DNA of 63,412 nt from Stylophora pistillata. Lineage: Eukaryota. The stretch covers positions 104,073 to 167,484 of the forward strand of contig NW_019218144.1 in the NCBI RefSeq assembly GCF_002571385.2. Direction: 5' to 3'. A program made the position numbers and the translations under genes. The notes beneath the pieces are model-generated. The model was given only the letters and a program-made list of their open reading frames with translations. It was not told the origin of the DNA and made no database searches. Positions 25,550 to 63,412 of this stretch are shown one piece after another (position 1 is the stretch's first letter; each line of letters begins with the position of its first letter).

Positions 25550-28500
25550 ATGCGCAGCTCTTCGCTATTGAGAGCTGTCCTGTTCTTGCTAGTTGCTAGC
25601 CATGTGCTTACCAAGAAAAATAACACATCTACCTTAAATCAAGAAAGGAAAAATGTAACGAATGAAAAACGTCAAAATATAGGTAAGTACGTTCGTAAAC
25701 CCACGCACGAGTTTTCGTAAGCGCCAAACACAGACTAGAGATGCCTTTTCTCAGATGTTTCCTTTGGCCTTTTTAAAAAAATTGATTGTGAGTGATGCCA
25801 AAGATGTTTTTAGAAGCAGATACGTTGCAAACACATGTTTTCATATCCTTTTTATTCTTATAATATTTCATATTACGCAGTGACAAGTTGCTGTTGCTGA
25901 TGTCTTTGATTGGTCAGTCAGGTAACCCCTGCTTATTTTCAAAAATTTTACACACGACCCTTTCGTCTCGGATAGGAATGGTTACCTTATCCCAAACTTT
26001 AATTTGAGAGTAATAAAATGATTGACTGATTGATTTATTGAGTGATGCCTCGATAACTTCAGCAGAACGTTGCATCACCCAAGAAATGTAATTATCGACG
26101 GAAAAAGACCCTCTTTCCATAAAAAATACCCAAAATGGGTATTCATTTCTAAACAGTTGTTAAATTCCTGCGCTGACGATATAGCTCTCTTCTGTACTTG
26201 TCACAGCCTACAGTTATCCAAATGTTGCAATTCCATATGGCGCTGATGGTCTCCCTTGCTGTCCAGCCAACAGTTTTTGTACAGGTATGCATTCTTTTGT
26301 ATAAAAATGAAAAAATATCTCCTAAAGTCACAGTTTCCTATTGAATCATGCGTGTTCCCGACGAATAAACGAAGCAGCTCTGGTAACTGAATGACACTCA
26401 TCGTTAAGTGTGTAACTGCATGAGTGCCTGTATGGGTGAAAACAAGCTAAATTACACCGCCTATGCGGTCTGGTGTACCCCATAGGCATACAAATCGATC
26501 AACGACTTTCTGTCAAGGGTTACAGACACCGTCTACGATTAAGAGCAAAATAATATAAAAACAAAGTTATTACATCCATCTAAAGAAATTTTTGTGCCAA
26601 ATCGGGCTCAATTGCCTCAAATTTCCCTGGTTGATTCAGTCTCGAGTCTCACTCATGACAAATGCGGAAGCTAAGTGACATTTTTTTTTTTCTGCTCAGA
26701 CAAACCTCCCTGTCCGCCAAGTGCGATGCCGGAGATATCCAGTGCCCCTCAGCTGGATGCCGGGATATCATTCAACATGGTACCAGGTGGTATTCAGGAG
26801 CCAACAGCCCCACCTCAATCAGCATCTGTACTATCTATTCCAATTCAGGATCAACCAGAAAAGCCAACGCAACCGCAAATTCCACTGCATGCTAAACACT
26901 CTGAGGAGGATAAGACAAAGTTAAAATTACAGCCCAACAGAGATCAGGTGTATCACATCAGAGGAAAAAGTACGCACATTTTGTTGTTGTTGTTGTTGTA
27001 ATGCGCAACTTTGCTAATGCTGGAGTCAGAATGAATGTTGTGTTGTTGTTGTATAAGATGCAGGGCCAAAAAAGCTTCGAAAAATACTTGAAATTTGTCT
27101 GTTTGCAAGCCTTTTTTTCCATGAGGGGTCGAGGTCATCATTAATCTACGAGGGAATGTGAAAATGTCTGTAGGCATACCGTAAGGTACCATATTTTAAC
27201 GAAAACCTTTTGTTTCCATTTCGTGGGGCTCGTCCTGAAGTATTAGCTAGGTCGCGTATTGCTGTGCATGTTGTCCATGCTTTTCATATAATGTTCTTGT
27301 TTTGTTTTTTCAGTGTTTACAATTTGTTTTATAACATAACGTTGATACATTGTAGCAAAAAAATTCACTTTTATTTAACACTAAAATCTTACATGAGCAG
27401 AAAAAGAGAAGCGCGCAGAAACTGGTCCCTGCATTTGCACACGTCTACTGTACGTACACTCCTGGGAAAACGGTGTACACTAAATTGGCCAATCAGAGCG
27501 CGCGCTTTACTTTGGTTATGTTATAATGTGCGATGCTTCACAGCTCGTAAAAGATTCCCGTGTTTAAAAAGAGATAATTACTTCCTTGTTATTTTAGTTT
27601 GCCTCTGCTGATTTGCTTTGTTTCGTAACCAGGTTTCAAAAGTCTCGGTTGTTGGAAAGACACCTGGGACAGAGCTATTCCTCTGATGGAAAAGAAACAT
27701 GCCATGTTGTTTGAGCCTGACTACAAAAAGAGAACAAACGCGCTTATGAAATGCGCTGAGGCTGCATTGGACAACAGCTTTATCATTTTCTCTCTTCAAA
27801 ATGGAGGACAGTGTTTCTCTGGCAAAGATGCTGATAAGACTTTTATGAAATATGGCGTCAGTGATTCCTGCAAAGGTGAAGATAACATTGTGTTTTGATG
27901 AATATGCTTATCAGAAATCCTGGTAAACATGACAAACTATCGATTAAAATCAAATCAAATAGTTATCTTGCTCAGATCACAGGAGGCGGCTTACACTTAT
28001 CGTCTCGTTCAGTTATAAATCCCAGATGACTTCAGCTAGGTGACCATTTGCCCCCCAAAAAAAGTGGCACAGACCCAAAGGCGAGTGTGCCACTGCACTG
28101 ACGCTCCTATCACATTTTGACGTACAAATGAACAAACGTGCTATTTACACAATGAAAAGGGGAGAAAAAATCAATAACTTGCCTCGGACCTCCACCGTTG
28201 GCGGACAGTTTCTTTTAAGTTCCCAACGACATTTCTCGCCTACCCTTTCTTTTTGCTACTGGACGGATCCTAACTATTTCCTCAGGAAGCATTGACTTCG
28301 CCAATATAATTATTTAAGACTCCACGAGACGAGTATCTGTTCTCTAAATAAAAAATAGCCTCTATTTGACGCGAAAATATGCACTGATATTTGTCTTCGG
28401 ACATTTTCTGTTTCAAGTTGCGAACAGTTTTTCGAGAAAAACATCATGCCAGTCAGTAGACACGTATATAAAACCTAATTCCTTTATCGTCGTTTTAGTT

Positions 28501-31500
28501 TCATCGTTATTATCATTATGCATTATTCCTATCAATAATGTTGTTATTATCACAATTATGATTATTATTGCTATCTTAATTATTTTATTATTTCATTCGG
28601 CATCTTTTCTGTTCTCTTTTCGCCTTTCCTGCTGTTCAAAAACAGCATTTAATACTCATTTTTTGATGATCACCTGTCATGAGTTTTTTGCGCGATTTCT
28701 CTCTCTTGTTTCCACTGATTTATGATTAAACCTCTGCGTTTTCTTCCCTCAGCTGATGGAGAAGGAGGACCTTGGGGAAACGAAGTTTACCAGTGAGTAT
28801 TGTTACTATAAGATATGTCCTTACTTGTCAGTACTAACAAGGTGGGGGGGTGGGGTTTAAATGAATGCACGTCAAGATACAGAATGTTCTTCATGCTAGC
28901 CGTTGTCTAGTCGATTTCAAAAACTTCTTTTTGTTCCGATATAGGTATTTTAACAGCAACGCTTCCATTCCTAAGAAGAGCGACGAAACAGAGAGTGGAA
29001 TTTCCAAGGAAAGCATAGCTCAAGCTAACCCTAACCCGACAGCACCACCGACAACACAGCCGATAGCTGCAAATACACTGCCTCCAGCGGTGCAATTAAC
29101 GTCTTCACCCGTTGCACACAAAGCAGAAGTGAACCAATCCTCAGAGATCAACCCCTGGACGGAGCCTCAGAAAGAATCCGTCGACAGCGCAAGGAAACCG
29201 GACCTGAAGCCTTTTAAAGATGAAGTAGAAGAAGACGCCGTCGTGGCAGAGAACGAGGCAGACAAGCAAGCTTTGCTGAAAGAAATTCCAGCTAACATAA
29301 CAGAAGCAACTGTCGCCGAAGAGAGTAACGATACCATAGATGAGGACAATCCCTCTCAAACAGAAGTTTTCAATGTAAGCCCGCCAAGACCAAAACTTGT
29401 CACGCCGTTCAGAGGAAGATGCCCAGTTTGTCGTGAGTACTGAAGCACGATAACTTGTAACCTGCGAGCATCCCTTCATTGTGAGCGCTTCTGCAAGAGT
29501 GTTTTTTTTTTTTGCCCGCAGCTTTAACTACAGCGGCATTAAGGAAGGCTTGCTCGCAGGTTAGACAACCTTTTGAAGCCCTTTAAGGTGGTTCCTCGGT
29601 TTTTCACTGCGCATTCTGTACTGCGCATAAAAATCACCCAATCAAGCGAATAAGCTCGCCCATTCCGAGAACACGGTATTGTTCTTAAATCAATGGACCA
29701 AGTAAAGAGATACGATGGTCTTTAGCTCTTAAACAAACACGGTGACCTATATTTTTTATTGTATAATTTTGGTGAACAAATTATCTCCTTTTAATTGGAG
29801 AAATTGGAACAAGGTTATCGAGGGGAATAAAGGTATAGCTAAAACTTTGCACGAATCCCGTTACACGATGATGCACATATTATGACCTTGAAAGCAACGA
29901 ATCGCGGAACGTTTTGAGCCGATGTCGTTAACAAATTGCGCGATGCTCCACAAATTATAAATCAAATTGTTCCTCACGCACGTGAATTTCTACCTATCAC
30001 TTTTTTTTTTTTAAGTGTTACTTTGCTTCCAGTTACTGCAAAATGTACCGTCAACCGATGAACTGACACGCGTGATTAGTGAATCACCTTAAGTGTAAGT
30101 GTAAATGTGTGGTTCAAGTGGGAACATTTTTATGCCGTGTGGGAAAGGTCATTCCTCGTTTTTCTCCAAGATTGAATTCTCTAGTGGTAGATCAGTGAGC
30201 AAAAAATGTATTTAATGAAGTCAATTTTCGTATTATTCCTTTTTTTTTCAATGTTTGAAGTCACGAAATAACCCAGCAGAAGATAACCTTTTTTCGGAAC
30301 GTTTAGGACTACACGGTATACTACTTTATGATCACATACACGGTATACTATATGATGACATACATAACATACCTTCGGTGCAGCTGACCGTCACGCTCGT
30401 GTCACACAATTTTCCCGCTGGTCTATGAACGGCATCGTTTCCCAGCCACGATCCTTCAGTTTTCTCGATTTATTGACAATACAGCCAGCAGATTTGTTCT
30501 GATCTATATTCATCTCGACATTCAAGATGTATTTTTCAGAAATAGCTGGGCAAAGCTGCAGGTATTTACATTGTTTTCTTTACGTCGGAGTTGTTGACAT
30601 TGCGGATCGATTGAGTCGGATTTATGTTTGTGAATTGTTTATTCAAGCCAAGATTGAGTTCAGTGATGGTCCGTTCGATACTTTTCTAGGAATTTAAGTA
30701 ATATACCATTTACAATGTAAGACATCTGGCATCTGAAGGAGCGATTTTGAGGGATAATTGTAAAATTAGAATTGTTCACGGTGGCTACACTTTTGTTTTT
30801 GTACAGCAGTGCTGTGTTGTCGTGCACGTTCCAGGCATATATTTTTTACTGTTTCTGGGTTTTCATGTTTTTTTTTTTATGCTTACAAACCATGTAATAG
30901 AGGTTATTCCAAAGTAGAAAGACTAAATTAACCTACATTGCTAATATTTTTTTCGTCTGAAGCAAAATTATCTCTATGAACTTCAGTAACGCAATCTTTT
31001 GTTATTGTTAGTCACGCATGACGGATCTGCGAATTCAGACTAGCTTTAACGTTTTACCGCCTTGCATTGTGTAGAGTTTGATTTTTCTGGTTTGGCTTCC
31101 AAATGTGTTTTACCTGTATTATCATTTGAGTGACCGAAGTTGAGATATACCCTGTTATTTCCAATCCAGCGTCTCAAGAGATACAATATTTAACCATCGT
31201 GTTTTGATAAAACAAAATCACCACTTTAAGTTTTTTTTTTAAACCTCTTCGTCATGTGCATTAAAATGGGGAAAAGTAGGAAAGTGCATCAAATAGGCTA
31301 TTCCGATTTATTATTATGATAGTTTACAGATATATTGAACATGGTCACTGGATGTCAATTCGTCTAGGAGCTTGGTAATTGTTTTGCGTAAAGATCATGC
31401 TGCTCAGTCTTGGAATGAATCTGACCCTCATCAATTCTTATCAACTCTTCTTTCTTTCAGCAACTTTAAAGCCAACAGCGCCAATGAGTAAGTAAAATTC

Positions 31501-34500
31501 TATAATCATCATACTGTAGCTTAGGTTTTCTACCCCCCTTCGTTCTAACTCATCGTAATGTTCAGCGTAACTTATATCACTTTTTCTTACCAAGATCTTT
31601 TGTATCCACCTGTTTCTTAACATCTAGGTAGGATCCCCTACATCCGTTTGAGGATTTACTAAAAAAAATATTTCTCTCAAAGGTGAAGGTGACCCAAACT
31701 CCCCCCCCCCCTGCTAGAAACGCAAATGAAGTTCAATAAACTCTTAATAAGAAGCCATAGTTTATCACAGTTTCTATGCCACTGGGCATCACGTCGCCTA
31801 AATGTTCTTTTTCCTGTTTCAATAGCATGCAGAACGGCCATAGATCTTGCTTTCTTGATCGACGGCTCGGCGAGCGTGGAACGATATGGCATCGGAAACT
31901 TCCGACGATTGATCGACTTCGTCCGTAATGTTGTCCTCGGTTTTTCAGTTTCCCGAACAAACACGCGAGTTGGGGCCATTGTGTTTGGTACCAGGCCTTA
32001 TAAGCTTTTTGGCTTTAATAGCTACACAAACAACGGTGCCATATTCAACAAGCTCAACAAGGGGGTTCGTTATCCCAAATCAGGAAGCCGTATTGGTAGG
32101 GCGTTATTGATGGCGCAAAACCAGATGTTCCGTAAGAACACCAGGCGTTCGAGGACCACTAAGGTAGTAGTGGTCATAACCGATGGAAGTTCGATGGATG
32201 ACGTTTCAGGACCTTCAAACGCTTTAAAGGCCCGTGGAGTAAGAATTTACTGTCTAGGGGTGGGACGATATATTAATGGTCGTCAGTTAGACATCATGGC
32301 CTCTCCTCCTCGGAGAAATCACATCTTTACCGCGGACTGGACTCATTTGGGAATCGTAGTTAACGAACTCAGGAACGCAATTTGCTTAGGTACGTAACTT
32401 TTTTTCCTTTGATACAAAAAAAAATCGCATTATTTCGAATCTTGAGGACTTTGTTTCCCTCTTCCCGTTATCTCGAGCTTAAGATTGGGACCTGTCTGTG
32501 TATCTTTCCAATTTTACACAGGAAATGAACATCTTTTTAAGAAAAAAGAAATGGGTAACGAAATGATTTTGAATTGATACTAGTTTGACACCGATGTGGC
32601 TTGACTTACCCCAAGTTATCAAACTTGCTTAAACGTGCGATGGGGAAAGACTTTTAGTTCACGCAAGCAATCCAACTCGTCTTGTTTATTTTCAGGCACT
32701 GGAGGAAATCTTTTACCAGCCAAGCATCGTGTGTGCCTCTGTCCCATCACCAGACCCCCAATAAGTGAGTGGTAACTTAAAACAGCTAAAGTCTCAACAG
32801 TGTCGCAAGCAGTCCGGGTTTTCCCAGGTTTTGGTATACAAAACCCGAGCTATCTCTCGACTAACAGATGCACATATAATAGTAATCGCGACTCGATCAC
32901 ATATTTTCCTGCGCCTCAGTCAGTTCGTGAGAGGTGCGGTGGCTTCATGGTTTGTGCGCTCCACTCCAGATCGACTGGTCTGGGTTTGAGCCTTGGACAT
33001 TGTGTTGTGTTGTTAGGCAAGACACTTTACTCTCACAGTGCCTCTCTTCACCCAGGTGTTTAAATGGGTACCGGCGAATTTAATGCTGGGGAGTAACCGG
33101 GGACGGACCAGCATCCCATCCAGAGGGGAGTACAAATAAGGAGTTAAGCACCAGCCTGATGGGCCATTTGGCTCGTAAACAAACTTTACTTACAGCCAGT
33201 TTGTTCATTTTTTCACCCTGAGTTCTCACAGGCTCGTTTGATAATAATCTTTGCTCTGATTGGTAGTTGTGATCATTTCAAAACCATTTGAAAACGTAGG
33301 CTGGGCCAGTATAGTGACATACCGCAATATCAGTTTTTAAACTATAGTGGACTGGACACGGAACAAATGGTCGTGGAATCATCCCTTGCCAAGGATGAAA
33401 TACCAATCCACTAAAGTGGTCTCGTTTCTTAGTTGGAGTATGCACAGTTACTGTGTATGGTGAACGTACAGTTTAGTGTTAAAGTGACACGTTCTCTTAC
33501 CATTTCTCTTTCGATTTCAGAACCGACTACGAAGCCTACTAAAAGGATACGTAAGTGCAGATCTTCCAGGAATTGAAACACTATGTTAAATGGGTTGAGT
33601 GAGATGCACGGGGAAATGCTTTTTTTTTTTTAAGATAACCAAACAAAGGGGTGCTATATAATCTCGTGCTTGTAATTTGTTTTCAGTTCACATAAATTGT
33701 CGCCTATCATTTGTGGAAATCTTTAAACAAGTCTTGTATTAGGATATGCACATGCGTTCATTCGATCTCCACTACTAGACAAATAATTTTTACTTCATGT
33801 GGCTTACAGACTGCAACCACACTGAAACTTTGAATATAATGCAAATCTTTTCGACATGCCCAGTTTTTTGAGATCCGGAAATGTCTTGCTCCTTACAGCA
33901 CACGAGAATCTTTAGTCTGGTAACGCTGAAATTTTCGGGGAAAGGGCCCCTAGATGATATATGCCAAACAACAAAAATAAACAATGGAGAAGTTAATAGA
34001 TAAATAAATAGATAAATAATGTTGTTTTTCTATTTCTATCGAATCTGTTTCATATTTGCAGGATTTCCCCGTATTGTTGCGTTCTACCCGCTTAGTAGAA
34101 AAACAAGAGGCAAAGACATCAGCTCTAGCCAGAACCCTGAAGGAAGATTACACAACGTACGCCCCGCGCCTGGTCCTGATGGGCTGCCCGATGGCTCTTA
34201 CTATTTCAACGGAAGAAAAACCAGTTACATACATTTTCCCAACAAGGGAAAGCTCGATTCTAGATATTCCTTGACCCTCCTCGCCTGGGTCTACCCCGAA
34301 GGTTCTGGACCAATATTTCATTTTTCTCCGGGTGGAGTTCGCTTCTGGGTCGTCAGACCGAATACTCTATTCGTGCGATTTGTTCGCCGCACAGGGAGAC
34401 CAACCCGACAGTTGATCAGTCGCACTTTGAGACCTGGAAGGTGGAATTACGTTGGAGCGTCGTATGACGAAAGGACAGGAATTGCAACGTTATGGCGAGA

Positions 34501-37500
34501 CTCTCAACCTGTTAAGTCCCTGTTCATTGGTCGCATTCGTCTAGCTACCAATCGACCAGTAAGAATGGGGGCATTGCCACGTGACCTGCGGTACTTTCGT
34601 GGAAGGGTCTCTTGTATGCAAGTCTATAGTGTACCTTTGTCTGGTCCTGAAATAAAAAGAGCTGAAAGAGTTTGCTTCCGAGCACGTGAGTAAAAATCCT
34701 TGTGTTACACATATTTGAGTGGTAGCCAACTAGAGCTCCGCTCGTATCTAGTTAACCCTTTAATATCATAGGTGAGAAATTACTCCTTAAATTTGGCTCG
34801 AAATTTCAGCGTCAGTTTTTGATTTCACATGTGAAATTACAAAATTGCAATGGTAACATCTCTTGTATCTCGATCAGAGCCAAGATGGCGTCGAGATTTA
34901 AGACGGTGACCCTTGAAGAAGTTACGAAATTAAAAGAAGCGGCCGAAAATTTAACTACGCGAAAGAGCACAATTAACTAGATGCGACTTTTTGAGAAGTA
35001 GTGTGACGAGAATAGCTTTGAGAAAAACCTGGAGATAATTCTTCCCGAGCAGTTGAATAAAGTAATCGAGCAATTTTGCGCCTCCGTGTGTAAACAAGAC
35101 GTAATTTGTTACACACGATATTAAAAGGTAATCAAATGGTTTTCTCGTGAAATTAGGAAATAATTTCACTTGCGTTTTGTCAAAATTCTGATAATTTCCC
35201 TCGCCTAAAGGCTCGGGACATTATCAGAATTTTGACAAAACGCGCGTGGAATAGCCCATTTCCGAATTACCCTTAGCCTCATTTTCAAAACGAGTCCCCG
35301 TGCTCATCCTTTCATACGATTATAAGTTTTCATTCACATGCAAATTGAACTCATTTTCACAAGAATGGTTGAGCACCAGGCCTCGGTTTGAAAAAGAGGC
35401 CAAGGGTAATTCGGAAATGGGCTATTATTTCCTAATTTCACTCGTCGCCATTTGATTACACATACTNAGATATAAACGAAGAAGGAAGAAAAGCCGGCAG
35501 GTGTACACACACAAAAAGACCGAGCCCCCACTTAGCTCAAGCTCTGGACCCGCCACTGAATATTCATACATTATCTAGATAATGAGAATACTCAAACTTG
35601 TCAGGTAGAAGTAGTTATCTTGATCTACTACCAGATTCTCACAACTAATTTACAAGGCAATGTGCAATAGCTTAAGGGGAGAATTTACAATCAGATATTG
35701 GGATTTAAACGGTTAACAAATAGATTCCATGTTGCCGTGCGTCTGTTTAGTAATAAATCACATATGACGTCAAGACGTGGTGAGAACTCAAAAGTGACAC
35801 ACAAGGCACAGCTGAGTGTGTTACTGATGTTCCTAAGTGATTACGTCTTATGTGATGTACTACTGTACAGGCCAACTTCAACATAAAGTCTATTTGTTTT
35901 CTATGACAAAAAAAGCAAAATTTTCTTCATGGTGACGCCATCTATGCGTTTGTTTTGCATTAGATCAAAGGTAAGAACCAATCAAAATGCGTGCAAGATT
36001 TAGCCACTCCTGTATCTGGCTCAAAGTCAGTGTTATTATTCATTTACGTAGCACTAATGTTTGATATTTACTTTCATTTGTAGGTCCAACTCAGAAGCCC
36101 AAGCCACCTCCACGTAAGTAGTTAGATTGACTTTATCATCACGTTCTTTAAGTTCTTCCCCGTTGAATGTAATAGCCTTAAGCTTCATATTTGGTAACAT
36201 TGTTCAGTAAGCTAACATCATTATATGACGAATTTCTTCTACTTTTCATTACTCACGTATTAACCAATTATGGTGTGTAAAATACACTAATAACTACTAA
36301 AGCTTAAAACAAAAGTACGACACCAGTATTTCTTAATCATAACTTCATACGTAATATTAGTTTACAATGTAGTTCGCGAACGTGAACTATAAACCTGTCC
36401 TCCATTTACAGGGCTCCCGAATGCTGTTGCGTTCTACCCCTTGACGGTGAATTACAGAGGTTATGACGTTGGTCCCAAGAGGAATCCACCGGGAAAATTA
36501 TTTAACGTAAAACCAGCGCCCGGTCCCGATGGTAGACGTGGTGGCTCCTACAGTTTCTCAGGGAAGTCTAATAGCTTTATTGAGTTCCCTAACACTGGGC
36601 CACTTGACACCCAGAACTCCATCACTCTCTTGGCATGGATCAACCCCCATGGAGGTGCGGGGCCTATCTTTAACTACGATCCCAGAGGGTTTGGCGTCCA
36701 TTTTTGGTTTACACGTGCAGGAAGACTATTTGCACGTTTCGTGCGGCGCACGCGAGCTATGACACAGCCGCTGATCAGTCGAATCCTTAGGCGCAGATCT
36801 TGGAGTTTTGTCGGTTGCACGTACGATCATACCACGGGAAATGCAGCATTGTACGTCAACGACAAAAGAGTCGCTACTAAGACTATTGGTCGAATACGTC
36901 TATCAACAAACTATCCTGCTAGGATGGGCGCAAAGATACGGGATAATCGCAACTTTCGTGGTTGGATAACGTGTATGCAGGTTTATGATGTAGCGCTTTC
37001 ATTACGAATGATAAGGATCGCTAAGAAACTTTGTTTTAAAGGTGAGTACAAACCTTTTAATGCTTTGACCCCAAAAAAGTGACCAGCATCTAATTTCTCC
37101 TTACAATATCACCCCTGAAACTCACATTAAGGTCATAAGAGAAAAGAGAATGACTACCAACTAGAGAAGTTCTTGACTGTTAAACAAATGATCCTTGTCA
37201 GCACCTTGGAAAATCTATAGAGAACAGTAGAGAGTATACAATGAAAATATGAAGTTCATATATTTTGAACTGCGGTACGAGATACGTATGATGCACGATC
37301 CTGCATCATACGTATCTAGTACCGCAGTTCAAAGAATATGAACTTCATATATTCATTGTATCTGATTTATCATCACGGGTTTATTACGAATCAACTTAAC
37401 GGCCTGCTCCCAGTTGGCTTGTTAGCTCAATTGGTAGAGCCCTGCACTAGTATCGCAGAGGTCAGTGGTTCGAATCCCGTCCAGGCCTGACTTTTTTCAG

Positions 37501-53400: not shown

Positions 53401-56400
53401 GGGAAGGGCATCACAAGGACATATAGAGTGTTGTTAATTATCTTCTATACTTTAGTATGCAGATCTCGGGTGGATCTCGGTATTCTTATCGACGGTTCCA
53501 GAAGCGTCGGACGAAGGAACTTCAGAAAAGTTATTGACTTCTTGAGATCCTTGGTCAGCTTCTTCCCCCTGTCCACGCGACAAACACGAGTGGGTGTGAC
53601 GCTGTTCTCTTCTCGATCGAGACTCGTGTTTGGATTCAAAAGATATGGCTCAAGAGCGCAGATTGTAAGAGCCATCAACCGTATAAGGTTTGTGTAAGAC
53701 TGGTGTCATGTGATTTGTTCCACACTTTGCCTATTTCTTCATATTTTGAGTGGACGAAACTTTGTTCCGCGTGCCAAACTCTTTTTTCTTCAGCCAATAA
53801 AACTGTAACACTCCCTGGCGGAAATATCCAAGCTGCGATTTACCTTGTTCTTATCCTTGCCAGATATCTGCCAAGAGGACGTGGAAGCTATATTGGACGA
53901 GCTCTCAGATATGTCCGAGGTGCGCTGTTCCGAAGGCGCGTCATACGAGGGCGTAAACGCACCCTGCTTATATTATCCGACGGTGCTTCCTCGGATCGTG
54001 TTCGAGGACCTGCCTTGCGCCTTAAGAGAGAAGGTGTAGAGTTATTCGCACTGGGAATCGGCTCGCGGTTTAGCAGAAGTCAGCTTCAAATGATTGCTTC
54101 CAGTCCTCTTAATGTTTTTACGGCTGGATTTAGTCGGCTTGGTAAAGTTATTCAGGCCATCAAAGAGAAAGTGTGTCGCCCTAGACGACCAACACCTACA
54201 CGTGAGTTTATCACCGTGTGATACTGAGTCCTCTGACTTTCCTAAGGGTTATTGAGTTTCCACATTGATCGCCATGAACTCATGTTTTTTTTTTTTTCTG
54301 TTACGAATAGCTCAGAGAATTCGGCGCAAATTATGACAATTGGGAAATTTTCATTTCGCTCAAGACTTCAATCCTGGGCCTAAGTGATAAGTAGTGGGAA
54401 GTACACAAACCCTTCAAAACGAAACAAATTTCAGAAAGTTTGGAAGATAATCTCTTGTTTCTTTTCTTTCGGTTTTTGTTTCTTTTTATGTTGGCTATTT
54501 TTTGTTTGAACTTTTGACTTTCCGTTATGTTCTATTATTAGTTTTAAATTGAAGCTTAAGACGTTTCTTTTTAACGAAGCATTTTGTAATTGATAAAGTT
54601 TTTATAGTTATTTATTCATTGTTAAGGTTTCAAATAGAACATTTCAAGTAATAATTAGTTATATGTTATATATCTTATTTATTATGAATCACATTTATTG
54701 TTATTTTGTTTTCCAATTATCATTATTATTATTTTTATTTTATCTTTAGTTTGTTGTAATTATTATGTTACGGTGCATTTGAATATATATACATAGAATT
54801 TGCGCCTTAGAAGTCAATAAATTATCATTATTATTATTATTATGAATTGCTCGAATACCTAACCGTCCAACCAGACAATTGAATTTATATTTCCCAACTT
54901 ATGATCTTTATGTCACTCTGAAAGAATTATTGGTGTACTTATCATGATCTGGCATGAGTACTCGGCTAATTGTAAATTATTTTTCTTTTGCAGCTACTGT
55001 ACCAACGCCGACGAGTAAGTGTATCATAATTACTGCCAGAGTTGCGGTTACGCTACTGTTTTGAGCAATCCAATGATACCTCGCCAAAAAACAAGTTCGA
55101 TCAGTTCTTTTCAAACTGCAAGACGTATTGAGACTGATTTATTGACTGATTGTTAACCTCAAAGGCTCACTCTTTGATTATAACACAATCCGTTTAGGAG
55201 ATGTAAGATTATATTAGAAGACGCTTTACTAAACCCAACAATAAGTTCATTTGCATAGAAACATTTCCTGCAATTGCAGGGTAATTTTCAATTAAGAGTC
55301 GGTAGTACTCAAAAATTGCATTGGTTTTGCTTTGATTCGCTCTGTAAATGGTTTAGAAAACTCGCCCCACCATCGAAATCAGTGATAGGCGAAGCTAAAA
55401 CCAATTACGATTTGTTCCCCTGCGTCTTCCCGCGCTTCAGGCATTTTGTTTGTGTTTTTTTCTAAAAGTTGTGAAATACCACAGAAGATAATTTTGTTCA
55501 TTCGAATGGCGGCTGTGATAAATTTGGTTTGAGGTTAAGAAACTTAATCGAAATGTGCTCCATGCGATGAATAGCAAAAGTAAAGTATAGCTATTTTACA
55601 GAACCACCCCGTGCCGTGGCACTGTATCCCCTGAACAGCAGAACCCAAGGACGAGACATCGGCCCCAGGAAAAATAAACCCGGGCGTCCCAGTCAAGTAC
55701 GTTTGGCCTCTGGACCAGACAAGTTTCCACGGGGATCCTTCTATTTCACCGGTCAGCGTGGTAGCTACATCTATTTCCCTAATAATGGTGGCATTGATAC
55801 CAGAAACTCAATTACTCTCCTAGCTTGGGTCCACCCTGAGAAAGGTGGTCCTATATTCCACTACAACCCGCGAGGCTCGGGCGTAAGCTTCTGGATCTTA
55901 AGGAAGAATACCTTGTATGTAAAGTTCGTTCGGCGCTCCGGTCGTGGGTCGTTTATTCTGAGAGCACAAGGTATTCGCCCGCGGATCTGGAACTATATTG
56001 CTGCAAGTTATGACTGTAAGACCGGGCTAGCTACCCTCTGGCGCGAGTCAACGCCCATTGCACAGAGAAATATCGGAAGAGGTTTGAGGCTCGCTACCAA
56101 TTATCCCGCGATTATGGGAAGTAGACCAGGATCTAGAACTCGTTTCCGTGGTCGGATTGCTTGTATGCAGGTGTTTGATGTGGCACTAACGGGACCTCAG
56201 ATGAACAAGCGACGTAATGTTTGTTTCAGAGGTGAGCACTACTGGATTTGACTCTCGGCTATTACGCTATACCATATCTGAAAAAAAAACTACACCACTT
56301 CGTACACCACAGGAATTCTATACGTTGATGAAAATTCGTTAAAAATATCGCTTCATTCTGCAAATTTGTGTGATAAAACTTCAAGTCTCTTCCAGAGAAT

Positions 56401-59400
56401 ACCATCTAAGCCCTGATCTTTTTGGTTCCTCATGGGATAATAGCCTAGCTCTCACAAATCGAAAGTGAAGAATTTTCACAAGTTTTTGTAAAAGAAGAGT
56501 TCCAAAAGCGTAAGTCATAAAAATTCCTCACTAGTTGCTTTAGTTTTTTACCGACCGTTATCATAAAGTTATACTAATTCAGGCGAGAGCGGAGACTGGG
56601 GCATTCTTTCGGTCAAGTTACTTATCTTTGAAGCCTAGTTTCGAGACATGCTCACGAAGAAAAAGTATTCATTGAGATATCTTGTTTTATATTTTCCAAT
56701 AGTTAAATTTTGAGCTCCCATGTGGCAATTATTCCAGTCAGTTGCGGATGTAGACTTCACCCTAAGACTTATTAGTCGGCCGAGCTTAAATCCCTGCAAT
56801 ATTCCACACTTTAAGCTGAGTCGATATGTTTGCTTTTAATTGCCACTATGTGATTTTTTTTATTTTAGGTGCTCCCCCACCAGAGCCGCCTCCTCCAGGT
56901 ACGTACTGGTTCTTCTTCAATGACACAAGTTAATTATTGAACTGTGTGACTTCTAGTATGGTCATTCAACACGTTAAACTTTGGGTTACAGATTTCATCT
57001 TCCTGATAAAAAGAGCTTAACGTTGGCAGGGAATAATGTCAAAAACGCTTTATATGAATGCATGATTTATTCTAACAAAGATATAGATATCGTGTGGCAA
57101 CCGAGGGTGATTTTCTGTCTTTCAGAGTTACCGCCTCTTGTAGCCATATTCACTCTGGATGGTGAAACAAAAACCAAAGATATCACTCGTAACAACCCGC
57201 CCGGTATCCCATCGCATGTCCGTCCAGCACCTGGACCCGACGGAAATCCCAAGGGATCAACTCAGTTCTTCGGATCGTCAAACAGTTATATCGAATTCCC
57301 AAACAATGGAAGGCTTGATACCAGGCGTTCTATGACCATCTTGGCTTGGATTTACCACAACGGGAGGTCTGGGCCTATCTTCAATTACGATCGGCGTGGT
57401 TTCGGAGTTCATCTATGGATGGTTGGACCCAGAGTACTTTTCGTTCGTTTTGTTAAACGCTCACGAGGGAGAACATCTTCAGTGGCGACCTACTCTACAA
57501 AACCGCGTTATAGAGCTTGGAACTACATCGGAGCCACTTACGATTACAACACCGGTGTCGCTACATTATGGCTGGACTCGAAACCTGTGGCGCGACAGAG
57601 CATCGGCCGCTTCGAGCTAGCCACGAATTATCCAATCAGGATGGGTGCGCGAATCGGCGATAAAAGGGCTTTCCGCGGTAAAATCTCCTGCGTGCAAGTG
57701 TATAGTATCGCTTTAAACGCGAAACAGATACGTGGAGCACGGAAGCGGTGTTTCAAGAAATGTAAGTTGATCTATGTTGATTGCCTGCTTTTAGAAAGCT
57801 ATGGTGATGCGTGCTCGTCGAAGTTTAATGCCTAATAAAGACAAGCAAAGGCATTCTTCACGTTGCAATTTACAGTTGAAAAGACTCAATATCGTAAGAC
57901 ACACGATGAAAACTTTGACTTAAGTTGTACCAAAATGGTTTGCACGTTTTCAAACGCCAATTATTTGATGAGTCGAATGGGCCACCAATTTTTTTTTCTT
58001 TTTTTTTTTTTTTTAAGTCAGCACACTCATAAAACAAAATATATCATTTTAGGCAAGGTTGTATTTATATAAGCACGATAAACAGAAAACTCATCTTTCA
58101 TCAAAACTATAATTAGCCTACTGGTTGTTCAAAAGAAGACAACAATTGATATAAGCTCAACGTGTAGGATCTGTTTTATTTTTTATAGGAACTTTTATTT
58201 TAGGGAGAACAGTTCTATCAAGTTTTGCCTGGGAATACTTGAAAAAAGATTCACAAACTGTTTATGAAATGAATGGAAAGCGTAATGAGATTTTTAATGC
58301 AGGCTAGCCCTTTTAACTTTGCGAAACAACAAAATGGTTACTTTTACGAGCAAGCTTTACCACTGTCATCGATTTTCGACATATTTTAGTACAGATCTAA
58401 TCAACAAATTGACAGTGGTTTAGCGTGGTCTGCACTCTTATCGACAACGATATTCTTCATCACAGTTGTTAAAATGTTGTGGACTCACGAGACGCAGCCA
58501 AGCTAAGCCACCGTGGATTTGTTTTTTACCACAACATCGGCGTCAAATAAAACTTTCAGTGCGTGACACGTTGCGTGACACGTTGACGAGAGAAGCGTTT
58601 TCTCTACTGTTATCGACAACGGAGAATTGGCCAATCAGATTGCGACAATATTGCCAATGGTGATGGAAAGGCCATTTTAATTTCCTTTATTTCTCGCTCA
58701 TATTTAGGGCCCATCACAAAGCCAACGCCTCCAGGTAAGTAGGTTTCAATGCTAAAAATAAATGTGTTAAACTCTGGATAATCACTGTGAAAGATATTGC
58801 TCAAGCACTCCAAAACCCGAGACTAAAATTGTTTAACTTCAGGAGAGGCGTCTTTTGCCACCGCTGATAAACGCTATAAAAAGTGACAGCTTTTTTGGAG
58901 GTTACGGAACTTTCCTCCTTTTATGCGGCGTCTTTTTAAGATTTTGTTTACATTGAGTTTAAGGTCGAAGTCAGAAATAAGGTGAGGCTTGCTATCTTAG
59001 ATATTGCATTTTTTGTGATAATCACTTTTGTCTCATTTTTCTTTTCAGTCGTAACTCCTACACGTCCTCTGCCAGAAAGTACGTTAAAGTCGTAATTTAT
59101 CATTTGTCATTTATTATTTATTTATTATTTATTATTTATTTGTTATTTATTATTTATTGTTTATCGTTTATTATTGGTAGTAGTATTGGAAGTAGCATTA
59201 CCGTTGGGCTTTGATTTAGAGCCTTTTTTATCTATGAAGCCGGCGTTACTTGTCTTTGCCAAGCGTTATCTCAATGATTTATCAAGTATGGCTTTGTGAA
59301 CTCGCAAAAATATTAGACCTGTTAATCGAACGAAAGTGTGATATCACACTGTTTATATCGGGCGTAAAATGTAATGTGTTTTGTCTTTCCTTTGTTTGTC

Positions 59401-62400
59401 GTATCTAGTGTGTAAGATTGGAATAGACCTCGGGTTCCTTGTCGATGGATCTGGAAGCATCGAATACCAAGGTAAGGGAAACTTTGCTCGTATACTAAAC
59501 CTCATTAAATCGTTGGTCAGCTTCTTTGAAGTGTCTAAAGGAAAGTCACGAATCGGTTTTGTGTTATTCTCTTCTCGACCGATCCCAATTTTTGGGTTCC
59601 GACGTTATTCGTCTAAAGTGCAAGTCCTTCGGGCGATCGATCAGGTTCGTTATCCTCGAGGGGGCACGCGCATCGGAAAAGCTTTACATTTTACCCGAAA
59701 CTACCTCTTCAAACGACGGATACCTCGGAGGAGAAAGCAGGTGCTGGTGTTGATCACTGATGGTATTTCACAAGACCGTGTTGGTCCAGCTGCAAGTCGC
59801 CTAAAGGCCACTGGCACTGAAGTGTTCGCAGTGGGTGTTGGAAAGAACTACAGGCGTAGACAGTTGCACCAGATAGCTACAGATCAGAAGCATGTACTGA
59901 CCACCTCATTTAGCATGCTAATGACAATTATACCGGGCATAAAGAACCAAGTGTGCCAGCGGCAAAAAGTTGGTGAGTACAGAAGATCTTTACTTCTCTT
60001 CTATACCAGGATCGTATTGTTTCATTAAAAAGAAAACAAGATAGCGGTAGAATTCAGGGCACTTTTGTTAATGATTTCATTTTAATGAAACTTTTGCGTG
60101 AAAAAAGTGCTAAAATCGTGCTTTCAAAAGATGATGATGTGGAGTGGCTTAAAGATGGCTGGTTGTATAGTTGCTCTGCATAAGTAGTTTCCTTTGAAAC
60201 TTGAAGAGGAAGGATGGGGAACTCACAGCAATAACTGTTTCAACATATGATTTAGGTTTACTATCTTATTTGTCTGAAAGAAATTATTTTCTATTTTCTT
60301 TTCCCAATCTTACTGTGGTAGAGATGATGTTATGACATTTGAAAACCATATCACTGTCTGGATAGCAAAAACACTCGCAGAAACACCACGCATCGAAAAT
60401 GCGTTAGGAATCATCTCTTCTCCACAACAATTCATTGCTACTTTGTGAATAAGGAGCTCATGAATATTGCACATTTTTTCACTCTGTCTTTCTTAACTCT
60501 CAGTACCCACCGTCCGCCCTATCAGCAAACCAACCACTACACAACGAGGTAACTATACAACTATTCTAAATCTCTTATATCGATTTCTTTTGTTCAATTA
60601 TTCCTGTGTAATTCTTTAAAGTCTGCTTCCTTATCTTCCTCAGCGTGTCTGATTTTATCAGCTAACTTCACCTTTTTTCTTAATATTGCTTGGCATAAAT
60701 AAAAAAATACAATGATTACGTGCTTTTAAACTTTTGCATTTACTCTCTCGCACCGATACTCACACTTTTAAACACAGCTTTGCGAATTCAGGATTTGCTT
60801 TTTTCTACTTAAACTTACAATTTCATTTTCTTTACATCCTATAGTGGAACTTCCCAGAACACTGGCTGTGTATCCGCTGGACTACATCAGGCGCGGACGA
60901 GACATCAGTCGTAATAGAAACCCATCAGCCAGATTTTATGGTGTCACATACAAACAAGGCCCTGATGGCAGACGGGGCGGTTCTTCACAATTTTACGGAA
61001 GATCAAGTAGCTACGTGGAGATTCCTAACAAAAGGAGACTAGACGCTAGATATTCCATCACTGTCTGTATTTGGGTATATCACGAGGGACGACGTGGTGT
61101 TATACTTAACTACAATCCAAACCGGAGAGGCTTCCAGCTGCGCATGATCAGTCCCAGAGTACTTCAAGTGATAATTGTTCGACGAATAAGAAGGACAACA
61201 ATAACGGTACAGACAAGAGGAAGAGCTATAAATTACAGGGCTTGGAGCTACATAGCTGTAACATATCACGAGCGAAGTCAAGTAGTGACCATTTGGGTAA
61301 ATTCCAAACCAGTTGTTAGACGAACAATTGGTAAAGTTCAGTTAGAAACCAGGAAGGCAATCAGACTCGGTGGACAGAGAGGCAGCAGGGAGTACTTCCG
61401 TGGTCGTCTGTTTTGTCTTCAGTTGTACAGTGTGGCGCTAAACAGGAAGCAGATTGAAGAGACTAAGAAACGATGCTTCAGGAAAGGTAATGCATCTTTC
61501 TTTAGTTTCCTCTTAATTTGAGTTTCTCCATTTTTAATCCCTTACATCAGCCAGTTCATTTGATTCAACATGAATTACCATTGGCTCGTTGTGTTTACCT
61601 GACATTTGATTTCATAACACTCAATCGAATGCTCTCTGATAGCTTAAGTTTTACTTAACTTTTGTCCTTTGTTTTAGTGCCCATCACAACTCCAACTCCG
61701 ACGCGTAAACCTACACCTGCTCCAAGAGGTAAGCCACAAATCCGTGACGTAATATGGTTTTTATCTCCTCGTACTAATCACACGACACCAGAACCTGTAT
61801 TGAAATTGAATAAACCGGCAACAATAGATACCTACGAAAAAAAACTTCTCTATTCCTGGGATCAAGACATCAATGATATATCAATGCAACATTATTTAGC
61901 TTAAACTCATGTCCGATCTTAACACAATGCAAAACTCGTCTAATTTGTTCAGGGTTTGCGATTACCTTGCGGTAAGTGACATAACTTTCTTAGCGAGATA
62001 ACATCTTTTGGTGCTCCGTATCCAAATGATTCCAAGAACATTCTGCCGTAGTGCAGTATTTTGAAAAAAATTACCTCTGGTCATTTTTTTTTTTATGCAC
62101 AGTTTGCACAGCCCGTGTTGACCTCGGCTTCCTTATTGATGCGAGCAGCTCTGGAAGGAGAAACATCCCCCGTATCGTTCAGTTTTTGAGGGAGACTGTT
62201 CGCCGGTTTACCATCACGAGTAGAGCGGCACGTATAGGGGTGATAACATATGCATCTCGTCCCAGTCGAATTATTGGATTTTCGAGATACACTCGTGGTC
62301 AAATTTATAATGCCTTTAGAAGAATTGGTGTTGTTGGACGCGGAAGGTATCTAGGTAGGGCATTGGCATATACCAGACGTTACCTATTTGGAGGAAAACC

Positions 62401-63412
62401 TCGGTGTGGGAGGCGAAGAGTTCTGATTGTTGTGACGACGGGACAGTGGGTCGATAGGGTAAAGAGACCAGCCGAGGCACTTAAGGGAGCTGGTGTGGAG
62501 ATATTCACGATTGGTATTGGCAGCATCAGAAGGACCAGTCTGTTACGAGTTACAACTGACACAAAGCATGTATTTATGGTTGGGTATACACAGCTTTTGT
62601 CCATTGTAAAAACATTAAAGGACAGGATTTGTTACTCTCCTGGTAAGTTTAATTTAGGGACATGTGTCTTCACTACTGTGAAGTGACGGGACCATAGTAC
62701 TTTCTGATCACTCGTGACCTTCCTAAAAAACCCTTTTTTTCGTCTTCGGAGCAATCCGTTTTAATTAATATCTGTCCTATAACCTTTATCAAGATCAGAT
62801 CTATTTATCATCAGTAGCTGAGCTTAGTTGCCGCGTTAAATTTAACGTTCAGTGTAATTCTCGGGATGGTTATCAGCACACTAACCACAGCAATGAGACA
62901 ACAGCAATTTCTGATTACTCGTGACCTTCCTAAAAACCCTTAATTTCATCATCAGAGCAACTAACCATGCCTACCATGCATTTGATAATTATTCGTACTC
63001 TCTTTTCTTAGTTATTCGCCGTGGAGCAGTTGCAGTTTATCAGCTCACCGGCGCCTCCAAGAACCGTGACACCAGTGGATACGTCAACCCACCTGCCACA
63101 TTTGTAGGTGTTTACTACGCACGTGGCCCAGACAATCATCCACAAGGAGCCCTTTCCTTTAGAGGAACAAGAAACAGTTATGTTTTGATTCCCAATAACG
63201 GCTGTCTGGACACAAGATACTCACTTACAATTATCATGTGGGTGTATCCCGAGAGCAGTGGACCTTTGTTACATTTTAATCCAAAAGGCTGGGGTGTTCA
63301 CGTGTGGATCATAAGTCAGTTCAGACTTTTCGCTCGGTTTGTACCTCGCTCACGCAAATCTGTGACAGCTGTATACAAAAAGATAAAGCCACGCCAGTGG
63401 AACTATATACGA
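25550..63412 (+). CDS. Giant secreted Arg-rich VWA/LamG multidomain protein; 3'-incomplete, at least 46 exons, about 4,780 codons, in-frame TAA at 51338
   Basis: 5' exons 25550-25682 (signal peptide MRSSSLLRAVLFLLVASHVLT), 26700-26969, 27633-27875, 28753-28792, 28945-29432. Then domain exons (listed separately) with micro-exons 32696-32764, 33521-33550, 36084-36113, 37924-37974, 39473-39514, 40802-40828, 42187-42216, 43766-43795, 44947-44997, 47449-47496, 48918-48935, 50463-50513, 52914-52943, 54994-55014, 56869-56898, 58708-58734, 59049-59078, 60504-60548, 61678-61728. All GT-AG with consistent phase. Confidence 0.85.
27633..27875 (+). CDS. Gene 4 exon: WSC-like domain
   Basis: FKSLGCWKDTWDRAI...LMKCAEAA...FSLQNGGQCFSG...KYG.SDSC; completed by micro-exon 28753-28792 (DGEGGPWGNEVY). 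Confidence 0.85.
28945..29432 (+). CDS. Gene 4 exon: acidic P/T/E-rich linker ending CPVC
   Basis: ORF 28865-29443 trimmed to ag|g...c|gtgag; rich in E/D. Confidence 0.8.
29587..30088. mobile_element. TTAA-flanked non-autonomous DNA transposon (Kolobok-like termini)
   Basis: TTAA-ggtggttc ... gaatcacc-TTAA. Confidence 0.6.
31826..32389 (+). CDS. Gene 4 VWA domain 1
   Basis: DLAFLIDGSAS...VVVITDG...IYCLGVG; phase 1-1 exon. Confidence 0.92.
32928..33190 (+). mobile_element. tRNA-derived SINE with CORE-like middle region
   Basis: A/B-box-like head, then gtgttgttaggcaagacactttactctcacagtgcctctc...aaatggg resembling the MIR/CORE domain, and a tttac tail. Confidence 0.65.
34062..34685 (+). CDS. 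Gene 4 LamG-like domain 1
   Basis: AFYPL...GPDG...FPNKGKLD...LLAWVYP...WNYVGASYD...FRGRVSCMQVY. Confidence 0.92.
35251..35426. mobile_element. MITE with 21-bp TIR, nested in a palindromic element (about 35125-35465)
   Basis: aatagcccatttccgaattac ... gtaattcggaaatgggctatt interrupts the right arm of the host hairpin. Confidence 0.75.
36412..37041 (+). CDS. Gene 4 LamG-like domain 2
   Basis: Same motif set; phase 1-1 exon of 630 nt. Confidence 0.92.
37238..37557. mobile_element. tRNA-like-sequence-containing retroposon with terminal fold-back and 12-bp TSD, nested in a MITE (about 37056-37590)
   Basis: TSD agtagagagtat at 37226-37237 and 37558-37569; hairpin about 37236-37360; tRNA-like ggcttgttagctcaattggtagagc...ggttcgaatcccgtccaggcc at about 37416-37487. 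Confidence 0.75.
38205..38480. mobile_element. Palindromic non-autonomous repeat (hairpin 38208-38325)
   Basis: aacaattattccac ... ccaacgaggcgcgtagcgccgagttgg ... gtggaataattgtt. Confidence 0.7.
38648..39211 (+). CDS. Gene 4 VWA domain 2
   Basis: DLGLLLDGSGS...LLVVTGSRS...EIFAVGMG. Confidence 0.92.
39867..40493 (+). CDS. Gene 4 LamG-like domain 3
   Basis: Motif set conserved; phase 1-1. Confidence 0.92.
41226..41864 (+). CDS. Gene 4 LamG-like domain 4
   Basis: Motif set conserved; phase 1-1. Confidence 0.92.
42952..43518 (+). CDS. Gene 4 VWA domain 3
   Basis: DLGFLIDGSGS...RGKTYIG...MLTDG; intact MIDAS. Confidence 0.92.
43988..44623 (+). CDS. Gene 4 LamG-like domain 5
   Basis: Motif set conserved; GRLFC subtype. 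Confidence 0.92.
45116..45658 (+). CDS. Gene 4 VWA domain 4 (degenerate MIDAS, CGRRR subtype)
   Basis: DLGFLVDASRV...GRPRCGRRRVLVVLATGES. Confidence 0.92.
46277..46945 (+). CDS. Gene 4 LamG-like domain 6 (NNGCLD subtype)
   Basis: 669-nt phase 1-1 exon. Confidence 0.92.
47095..47228. mobile_element. Short MITE-like repeat with tatccagtggata palindromes; degenerate relative at about 2595-2680
   Basis: ggccccggttgt...acaacagggc ends and repeated tatccrstggata. Confidence 0.55.
48066..48635 (+). CDS. Gene 4 VWA domain 5
   Basis: DLGFLIDGSSS...RGGTYIG...VLTDG; intact MIDAS. Confidence 0.92.
49139..49774 (+). CDS. Gene 4 LamG-like domain 7
   Basis: GRVFC subtype; 636 nt, like domain 5. Confidence 0.92.
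50097..50410 (+). mobile_element. tRNA-derived SINE
   Basis: ttagcccaatggatagtgcg...gagggttcgagccccggccggacc head with A/B boxes continuing into a non-tRNA body. Confidence 0.6.
51291..51839 (+). CDS. Gene 4 VWA domain 6 (CGRRR subtype) with in-frame TAA at 51338-51340
   Basis: CRARIDLGFLIDGSR*TGSVTFQRIIEYVKETVRRF...; otherwise open, with intact splice sites. Confidence 0.85.
52121..52789 (+). CDS. Gene 4 LamG-like domain 8 (NNGCLD subtype)
   Basis: 669 nt; close paralog of domain 6. Confidence 0.92.
53456..54201 (+). CDS. Gene 4 VWA domain 7, split by a phase-2 intron (53456-53687, 53864-54201)
   Basis: DLGILIDGSRS...INRI AG|gtttgt ... ccag|A YLPRGRGSYIG...LSDG. Confidence 0.88.
55602..56231 (+). 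CDS. Gene 4 LamG-like domain 9
   Basis: Closest to domain 3 (PP.A, NYPAI.G.RPG). Confidence 0.92.
57126..57761 (+). CDS. Gene 4 LamG-like domain 10
   Basis: Closest to domains 2 and 4 (RMGA.IGD). Confidence 0.92.
59409..59972 (+). CDS. Gene 4 VWA domain 8
   Basis: DLGFLVDGSGS...RGGTRIG...LITDG; intact MIDAS. Confidence 0.92.
60845..61486 (+). CDS. Gene 4 LamG-like domain 11
   Basis: GRLFC subtype. Confidence 0.92.
62103..62642 (+). CDS. Gene 4 VWA domain 9 (CGRRR subtype)
   Basis: DLGFLIDASSS...GKPRCGRRRVLIVVTTGQW. Confidence 0.92.
63012..63412 (+). CDS. Gene 4 LamG-like domain 12 (NNGCLD subtype), truncated by the window edge
   Basis: ttag|TT ATT CGC: IRRGAVAVYQL...GPDNHPQG...IPNNGCLDTRYS...WVYP...WNY; not in the ORF track. 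Confidence 0.88.

Follow-up and report, generated by a model that had tools for sequence, protein, structure and literature searches.

Among described proteins, one of the nearest to the gene analysed here is collagen VI alpha-3 (with alpha-5/6), a secreted matrix protein with long tandem arrays of VWA (PF00092) domains and terminal cysteines. The gene lies on the forward strand of a Stylophora pistillata contig; it starts in a stretch of 63,412 nucleotides (nt) (the window, G000:C360:104073-167484, from a source assembly of 398 Mb in 5,513 contigs) and continues beyond it, and its exons encode a chain of VWA and LamG (Laminin_G_3, PF13385) domains of extreme positive charge. Its VWA domains bear a Cys at each end, and their closest solved structures are the N-terminal VWAs of collagen VI alpha-3 (best match, ~60-91 bits per domain), followed by mussel PTMP1 (PDB 4cn8, 193 bits over two VWAs), an invertebrate structural/adhesive matrix protein. 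Collagen VI has a triple-helical Gly-X-Y region with VWA domains on its flanks, whereas the coral locus is without Gly-X-Y, interleaves LamG and WSC (PF01822) domains among its VWAs, and is marked by extreme charge and by a depletion of N-glycosylation sequons. PTMP1 has two VWAs only, without LamG or WSC, and no orthology with it is implied.

VWA domains combined with a jelly-roll domain (TSPN or pentraxin) are known from the fibril-associated (FACIT) collagens XII/XIV and from SVEP1/polydom, and one amphioxus LamG+VWA match carries the source label COL12A1. The coral locus differs from these in its type of jelly roll, Laminin_G_3, and in having no FN3, collagen, sushi or EGF modules. No FN3, collagen or sushi module was detected in the Pfam-scanned stretches of the locus, and between 25 and 134.5 kb of the extended locus no forward-strand open stretch contains five or more Gly-X-Y triplets in a row. 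The EGF-type six-Cys pattern was absent from the forward-strand open stretches of the whole locus and the stretches scanned gave no EGF Pfam match, which also separates the gene from matrilin, in which VWA domains go with EGF repeats and a C-terminal coiled coil. The original prediction, which had seen no collagen or EGF segment and had set aside collagen VI/XII, matrilin and laminin, is borne out, since the defining parts of these proteins were not found. Full-length LamG homology (370-554 bits for 2-5 domains) links the coral domains to multi-Laminin_G_3 proteins of amphioxus, Lingula, Ptychodera and Nematostella, but these are acidic or mildly basic, much shorter, mostly without VWA, mildly sequon-depleted and unnamed.

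Marine bioadhesives (sandcastle-worm cement, flatworm and sea-star footprint proteins) are large or highly charged secreted proteins that associate electrostatically with polyanions. Their charge sits mainly on low-complexity repeats, that of the coral protein on folded domains; the comparison is one of analogy only, and no sequence relation is claimed.

In the window, VWA and LamG Pfam matches occur in long stop-free stretches of the forward strand from 31.8 kb to the window edge. Abbreviated V (VWA) and L (LamG) and numbered from 5' to 3', the 21 domains follow the order V L L V L L V L V L V L V L V L L V L V L, preceded by a signal-peptide-like start, a small Cys-containing exon, a Pro-rich stretch, a WSC-like domain and an acidic sequon-rich spacer; the V and L order first proposed is matched exactly. 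The nine VWAs score 46-131 bits and the eleven complete LamG copies 46-66 bits (gathering cut-offs 23.8 and 27.6 bits; 27.8 bits for WSC). Each domain occupies one exon, and all splice sites are canonical, with polypyrimidine-AG acceptors and donors of the GTAAGT or GTGAGT type. Exons are of phase 1-1 (two split-codon bases at the start, one at the end), the sole exception being the two halves of VWA7, which is interrupted by a 176-nt phase-2 intron (53688-53863). A frameshift in VWA7 was considered and rejected, since this intron explains the break and the split is kept in an orthologue (L012). Joined in frame, the 21 domain exons make 12,069 nt, or 4,022 codons, with one stop only; with the 5' exons, the linkers and the partial last exon the window holds ~4,750 codons, in agreement with the at least 4,780 of the original prediction. 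On balance, we lean towards reading the locus as one gene for a secreted protein of ~12,000 residues that would act as an extended, multivalent, polyanion-binding scaffold. The exons in the window, all on the forward strand, are as follows (nt, nucleotide; aa, amino acids; pI, isoelectric point; dN/dS, ratio of nonsynonymous to synonymous substitution rates; MIDAS, metal-ion-dependent adhesion site; L013, an orthologous contig).

25550..25682, +, exon 1, ATG and signal-peptide-like N-terminus (core LLRAVLFLLVA, then 3 N-x-S/T sequons); phase-1 donor G/gtaagt; 91% nt identity to L013
26207..26284, +, small Cys-containing exon, 78 nt, phase 1-1; 82.6% conserved island in the orthologue
26700..26969, +, Pro-rich exon, 16 Pro in 89 aa, phase 1-1; conserved in L013
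27633..27875, +, WSC-like exon, near-neutral pI 7.8-8.7; Pfam WSC E 1.2e-5, 25.8 bits (cut-off 27.8); 88.7% identity to the orthologue
~28945..29432, +, acidic Pro/Ser/Thr-rich spacer exon, pI 4.5, net -12, 5 sequons; conserved in L013
31461..31487, +, predicted Pro/Thr linker micro-exon before VWA1; canonical ag/gt; 89.6% conserved and collinear in L013
31826..32389, +, VWA1, pI 11.2; Pfam VWA 7.4e-36, splice sites, dN/dS 0.06
33521..33550, +, predicted Pro/Thr linker micro-exon; 93% over 29 nt in L013, collinear
34062..34685, +, LamG1, pI 11.4; Pfam, AlphaFold pLDDT 97, dN/dS 0.06
36084..36113, +, predicted Pro/Thr linker micro-exon; conserved, collinear in the orthologue
36412..37041, +, LamG2, pI 11.2; Pfam, splice sites, dN/dS
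37924..37974, +, predicted Pro/Thr linker micro-exon; conserved, collinear in the orthologue
38648..39211, +, VWA2, MIDAS degenerate, pI 11.5; Pfam, splice sites, motif
39867..40493, +, LamG3, pI 11.2; Pfam, splice sites
40802..40828, +, predicted Pro/Thr linker micro-exon; conserved, collinear in the orthologue
41226..41864, +, LamG4, pI 11.2; Pfam, splice sites
42187..42216, +, predicted Pro-rich linker micro-exon; conserved, collinear in the orthologue
42952..43518, +, VWA3, full MIDAS, pI 11.8; Pfam, splice sites, motif
43766..43795, +, predicted Pro/Thr linker micro-exon; conserved, collinear in the orthologue
43988..44623, +, LamG5, pI 11.0; Pfam, splice sites
45116..45658, +, VWA4, MIDAS degenerate, 19% Arg, pI 11.9; Pfam, splice sites, motif
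46277..46945, +, LamG6, pI 11.4; Pfam, splice sites
48066..48635, +, VWA5, full MIDAS; Pfam, donor 48635 used in an RNA contig
48918..48935, +, 18-nt Pro/Thr linker micro-exon; spliced between VWA5 and LamG7 in a poly(A) RNA contig, ag/gt sites
49139..49774, +, LamG7, pI 11.3; Pfam, splice sites, RNA contig
51291..51839, +, VWA6, in-frame TAA at 51338-51340; Pfam, splice sites
52121..52789, +, LamG8, pI 11.6; Pfam, splice sites
53456..53687, +, VWA7 first half; phase-2 split kept in L012, RNA contig breaks at the acceptor
53864..54201, +, VWA7 second half; Pfam, RNA contig leaves the genome exactly at donor 54201
55602..56231, +, LamG9, pI 11.7; Pfam, splice sites, dN/dS
57126..57761, +, LamG10, pI 11.0; Pfam, splice sites, dN/dS
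59409..59972, +, VWA8, full MIDAS, pI 11.5; Pfam, splice sites, motif
60845..61486, +, LamG11, pI 11.5, net +35; Pfam, splice sites
62103..62642, +, VWA9, MIDAS degenerate, pI 11.7; Pfam, splice sites, motif
63012..63412, +, LamG12, cut by the window end and an N stretch; profile match

The window array (4,022 codons) contains 13.9% Arg and 4.1% Lys but 3.1% Asp and 1.5% Glu (4.6% together), giving a net charge of +539 and a pI of 11.6. The original prediction had described Arg-rich, Asp/Glu-poor domains, quoting FRRRVIRGRKR and FKRRIPRRRKQ (both present, in VWA7 and VWA8), and had proposed per-domain pI as a check; the pI is 10.95-12.0 in every domain exon of the window, with net charges of +19 to +35 for the whole-domain exons. 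In the full array every domain has a pI of 10.2-12 and a net charge of ~+20 to +40 (less in short or split pieces), and three internal WSC domains are also polycationic (pI 11.0-11.6). Ordinary LamG-type copies elsewhere in the genome have 4.6% Arg, 9.3% Asp+Glu and pI 5-9, and full-length LamG homologues have pI 4.4-5.9 (amphioxus, Lingula, Ptychodera) or 8.0 (Nematostella match). The extreme positive charge is a trait of the subfamily, not of the domain type. Enrichment in aromatic residues, also claimed at first, was rejected as a special trait (12.1% here vs. 11.8% in ordinary copies). Few of the ~37 basic residues in each LamG domain hold a fixed place: 12 alignment columns are basic in 80% or more of the copies, and 88 are basic in some copies only. 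With most basic positions variable, constraint appears to act on bulk net charge rather than on particular sites.

Near-total loss of N-glycosylation sequons is a new feature found here. Expected counts were obtained from shuffles preserving the composition of each domain. The VWA/LamG exons of the window contain no N-x-S/T sequon, against 20.0 ± 4.0 expected (lowest value 8 in 2,000 shuffles), and the downstream domains one, against 37.4 ± 5.7 (whole array 1 vs. ~57). The same was seen in orthologues L012, L013 and L014 (1, 0 and 0 sequons vs. 9.8, 8.8 and 7.4 expected) and in database LamG domains of pI 10 or above (7 vs. 50), while ordinary homologues are mildly depleted (observed/expected ~0.6). 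The domains are paralogues, so these counts are not independent, but at 40-55% identity there has been ample turnover. By contrast, the non-domain N-terminal exons 1 and 5 (the acidic one) have 8 sequons in 206 aa. Such a pattern implies that N-glycans on the array domains would be harmful. Selection against sequons is understandable only for a protein that meets the glycosylation machinery of the endoplasmic reticulum (ER), which gives indirect but independent support for secretion.

A second gene built from the same domain kit was found on the minus strand at G000:C62:152251-186696, with two VWAs, nine LamG, two more VWAs and seven WSC domains. All its domains have pI 10.3-12.0; there is one sequon in its ~3,300 aa, and its LamG exons have 1 sequon vs. 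9.0 expected. Judged by sequence, the polycationic family is made up of two loci, this gene and the C62 paralogue.

Collinear orthologues of like charge are a further new result. They come from two long-read, metagenome-type, coral-type assemblies, in both of which the exon order is collinear with that of the window gene. Contigs L013 and L014 (European Nucleotide Archive (ENA) ERZ25067556) match 25.5-44 kb of the locus with ~85% exon nt identity and dN/dS 0.06-0.16 (dS 0.56-0.76), and contig L012 (ENA ERZ25073751) matches 52-78 kb with ~74% exon nt identity and dN/dS 0.05-0.16, with dS saturated or not computable. Orthologous domains in both assemblies retain 10-19% Arg and pI 10.8-12.0. Strong purifying selection, together with the charge kept in the orthologues, shows that the gene is functional and that its composition is functional as well.

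By eye, the sequence that opens at 25550 shows a basic n-region and a hydrophobic core of 12 residues, and it is conserved in the orthologue. In L013 the 5' exons form islands of 76-91% nt identity between introns that do not align. The N-terminal WSC-like copy falls short of the Pfam cut-off (25.8 bits), the internal copies score 28.1, 30.8 and 20.4 bits, and all four align well with one another.

Pro/Thr linker micro-exons are also a new result of the analysis. Nearly all introns between domain exons contain a candidate phase 1-1 micro-exon of 18-51 nt encoding a Pro/Thr-rich peptide. All seven of the candidates checked, from the acidic spacer to LamG5, are collinear in the orthologue with 87-100% identity, in surroundings of non-aligning intron. 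That at 48918-48935 is confirmed by RNA (16 letters between the joints plus AG, a unique match). The domains are joined as beads on a string by these short spacers, which are probably O-glycosylated.

By motif pattern, the full MIDAS signature (D-x-S-x-S, Thr, and Asp in T-D-G) is present in ~17-19 of 28 VWAs, about two thirds. In the window it is full in VWA3, VWA5 and VWA8, nearly complete in VWA1 and VWA7, and degenerate in VWA2, VWA4, VWA6 and VWA9, so that a MIDAS-less subtype is interleaved with a MIDAS-bearing one; some downstream copies are degenerate too. For LamG, no close solved relative was found by sequence (best E 2.5e-4), and its exons give weak Pentaxin matches. The AlphaFold model (predicted local distance difference test, pLDDT, 97; predicted template modelling score, pTM, 0.93) is a predicted concanavalin A (ConA)-like jelly roll, which Foldseek matched with probability 1.0 to ConA-like lectin-fold domains at 9-17% identity, a likeness at the level of the fold only.

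The 80 kb downstream of the window were scanned with profiles made from the window's own exons. The array, already predicted to continue at the edge, runs on for 68 kb on the same strand, to ~C360:235.9 kb (gene to ~G000:C360:235,877). The gene spans G000:C360 ~129.6-235.9 kb on the + strand, ~106 kb, of which the window holds the 5' 38 kb. The whole array has at least 28 VWA, 29 LamG and 3 internal WSC domains, plus the N-terminal WSC-like domain; its VWA and LamG matches total 11,719 residues with a net charge of ~+1,690. The original prediction of a giant bead-on-string protein, made of VWA and LamG domains of extreme positive charge behind a signal-peptide-like start, is upheld at this larger scale. 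The array ends in six consecutive VWAs, and among its final eight VWAs seven are divided between two exons. Beyond the last of them the sequence offers either a phase-1 donor or, if read on, a TAG with AATAAA 31 nt later; on these signals the 3' end of the gene is probably at ~C360:235.9 kb. An open stretch at G000:C360 ~224,222-224,527 (L009:6738-7043), which directly follows the third internal WSC, encodes repeated Pro-Arg dipeptides (RPRPRPRPRPRP) and is probably an exon for a polycationic linker.

A 4,979-base N stretch directly follows the window end. The VWA9-LamG12 pair before it (window 62000-63412) is 79-94% identical to the first VWA-LamG pair past it (G000:C360:173488-174910), and L012, the more distant orthologue, has one such pair only; the repeat around the gap arose by recent tandem duplication or else reflects a duplication made in assembly.

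Transcript evidence was obtained from RNA libraries labelled coral metagenome or coral-type organism. A contig from a poly(A) library (X2) joins VWA5, the 18-nt micro-exon and LamG7 through the predicted donor 48635 and acceptor 49139, and other low-depth contigs of that library break at the predicted VWA7 boundaries. The single gene proposed at first is supported by this splicing, but only in part, as the RNA support extends to at most two domain exons.

Several observations count against a single functional gene with a 12,000-residue product. No transcript crosses more than two domain exons, and no exon reads were found in two deep raw-read RNA runs (X11 and X14; ~2% and 6% of each read). 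A metatranscriptome (X1) covers introns as well as exons and is probably DNA or pre-mRNA, uninformative on splicing. The splice phase from the WSC exon to the acidic exon does not close in the model, which may lack a small exon at that point. For the 3' end two readings compete (stop and AATAAA vs. phase-1 donor at the same place, ~235.9 kb), and the locus is interrupted by the 5-kb N stretch and smaller gaps. The published coral skeletal proteomes examined name no such protein. Its digestion into mean tryptic peptides of 5.9 aa (in silico) was considered as a reason and rejected, since 64% of the residues are in peptides of detectable length (7-30 aa). Finally, four in-frame stops (one TAA, three TAG) lie in otherwise intact exons. 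Expression is either low in the sampled RNA or confined to a rare cell type or life stage.

The TAA (51338-51340) replaces the second Ser of D-x-S-x-S in VWA6, is one base from TCA, and lies outside all RNA records; it is the one stop in the 4,022 window codons, and may be a true allele, an error of the consensus or part of an exon that is skipped. The three TAGs are in LamG exons at C360:174618-174620, 189225-189227 and 207441-207443 (7.1, 21.7 and 40.0 kb beyond the window end), each at a Tyr codon of the relatives. Two of the three are at the same homologous codon (W-I-stop-H) of exons that are mutually 61-72% identical, and other assemblies have W-I-Y-H at this place in their orthologous exons, which are 82-86% identical. 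Stops and an almost complete lack of RNA reads would suit a decaying, functionless pseudogene array. This explanation is close to refuted: only four stops and no frameshifts occur in ~11,700 domain codons, with dN/dS at 0.06-0.16; conservation extends to the splice sites and the linker micro-exons, the orthologous exons elsewhere are unbroken, and one poly(A) contig is spliced.

The stops also bear on a second explanation, which we regard as unlikely: that the locus consists of at least two tandem transcription units, or of one unit with many exon-skipped isoforms, and that no 12,000-residue protein is made. As the exons are symmetric, skipping those with stops would preserve the frame, and any subset of phase 1-1 exons could be spliced together. 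RNA continuity that goes no further than two exons fits this explanation, as do the N gaps and a change in layout along the locus: the internal WSC exons (~113 and 119-120 kb) echo the N-terminal order of WSC then VWA, and past 120 kb the VWAs shift to two exons. On the other hand, the sequence ahead of the internal WSC exons revealed neither a signal peptide nor a start exon, and these WSC exons open with Pro-rich linker sequence after a VWA that ends in a phase-1 donor. Moreover, strand, phase, linker micro-exons and charge are uniform, and the exon order is collinear in two assemblies.

Database searches were made exon by exon, not with the joined protein. No named polycationic relative was found by a profile search of 1.84 billion representatives, by word-indexed searches or by cluster look-ups, nor any giant annotated coral model among the matches, a negative limited by representatives that can be shorter than the members of their clusters and by a possible lack of records close to the source genome. 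Matches of the polycationic type are unnamed single-exon fragments, and acidic homologues are called "uncharacterized protein". Such exons are present in hundreds of public assemblies, many of them coral-associated, always as unnamed single-exon calls of open reading frames (ORFs). The literature yielded no description of such a protein, and a sea-anemone matrisome paper makes no mention of one. The protein had been expected to match no characterised family, and no named relative emerged.

The same searches bear on a storage or packaging role, in which the polycation would condense the polyanionic contents of a granule or capsule (acidophilic granular gland cell, cnidocyte capsule). Stored in bulk, a protein of pI ~11.6 would render its cell acidophilic, and granular gland cells of that kind have been reported from a scleractinian (PMC5363355). 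The very low expression in bulk would suit a rare type of cell, and a protein of charge +1,690 would presumably need a counter-polyanion in transit. The profile search brought up no giant polycation from Nematostella or Hydra, the matches there being ordinary or mildly basic, which argues against a component common to all anthozoan cnidae. We consider such a role improbable.

Still less probable, in our judgement, is a surface or mucus defence polymer that would agglutinate microbes by charge (lipopolysaccharide (LPS), teichoic acids) and through lectin-like domains. A polycation with lectin-fold LamG and WSC domains, in a family expanded to two loci, has the properties required. However, at dN/dS 0.06-0.16 the gene does not show the fast evolution often seen in immune effectors, the Arg residues are spread over folded domains instead of amphipathic peptides, and furin-type sites are few (6 R-x-K/R-R in 4,000 aa).

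For the secreted scaffold that we favour, the following mode of action may be proposed. The sequon-depleted protein would pass through the ER with its domains free of N-glycans, and its like charges would repel one another, giving a very long, extended, multivalent scaffold able to capture and cross-link polyanionic partners. Binding could take place by bulk electrostatics, by metal-bridged carboxylates at the MIDAS-bearing VWAs (~two thirds), and by glycan binding of the WSC and lectin-fold LamG domains. In a stony coral, the likeliest partners would be sulfated glycans and Asp-rich acidic matrix proteins. A bolder proposal, which we put forward as speculation with a small chance of being right, is that a stony-coral family of giant N-glycan-free folded polycations, this gene and the C62 paralogue, supplies the missing positive partners of the very acidic skeletal and matrix macromolecules. 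Through charge and MIDAS-bridged carboxylates they would condense Asp-rich proteins and sulfated glycans into a dense phase that templates or glues a calcifying or attachment interface.

Coral matrix biology has centred on acidic proteins, and if the proposal is true an undescribed counter-charged partner would be added to them. Current annotation hides the gene from proteomic and expression studies, because it holds only unnamed single-exon fragments; a correct gene model makes tissue, stage and binding partners directly testable. Loss of sequons together with extreme charge would also be an unusually clean case of selection on the bulk physico-chemical properties of folded extracellular domains.

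Domains of the same types but of ordinary charge lie upstream in the window: a LamG at 4245-4889 (-, pI 9.9), a WSC at 9433-9906 (-) and a VWA of three exons at 18513-21211 (+). They were considered as parts of the gene and, given their ordinary charge, were taken as neighbouring genes. The remaining ORFs in introns are relics of transposons, and fragments of reverse transcriptase with one weak GIY-YIG fragment, likewise of transposon origin, occur upstream of the gene and within its introns (window 12914-13780 (-), L005:2082-2465, L006:5216-6010). An intronic stretch at window 50098-50400 has enormous, variant-rich RNA depth in all four runs, with many loose ends and one tRNA-like consensus, and is probably a dispersed repeat of the short interspersed element (SINE) type expressed from elsewhere in the genome.

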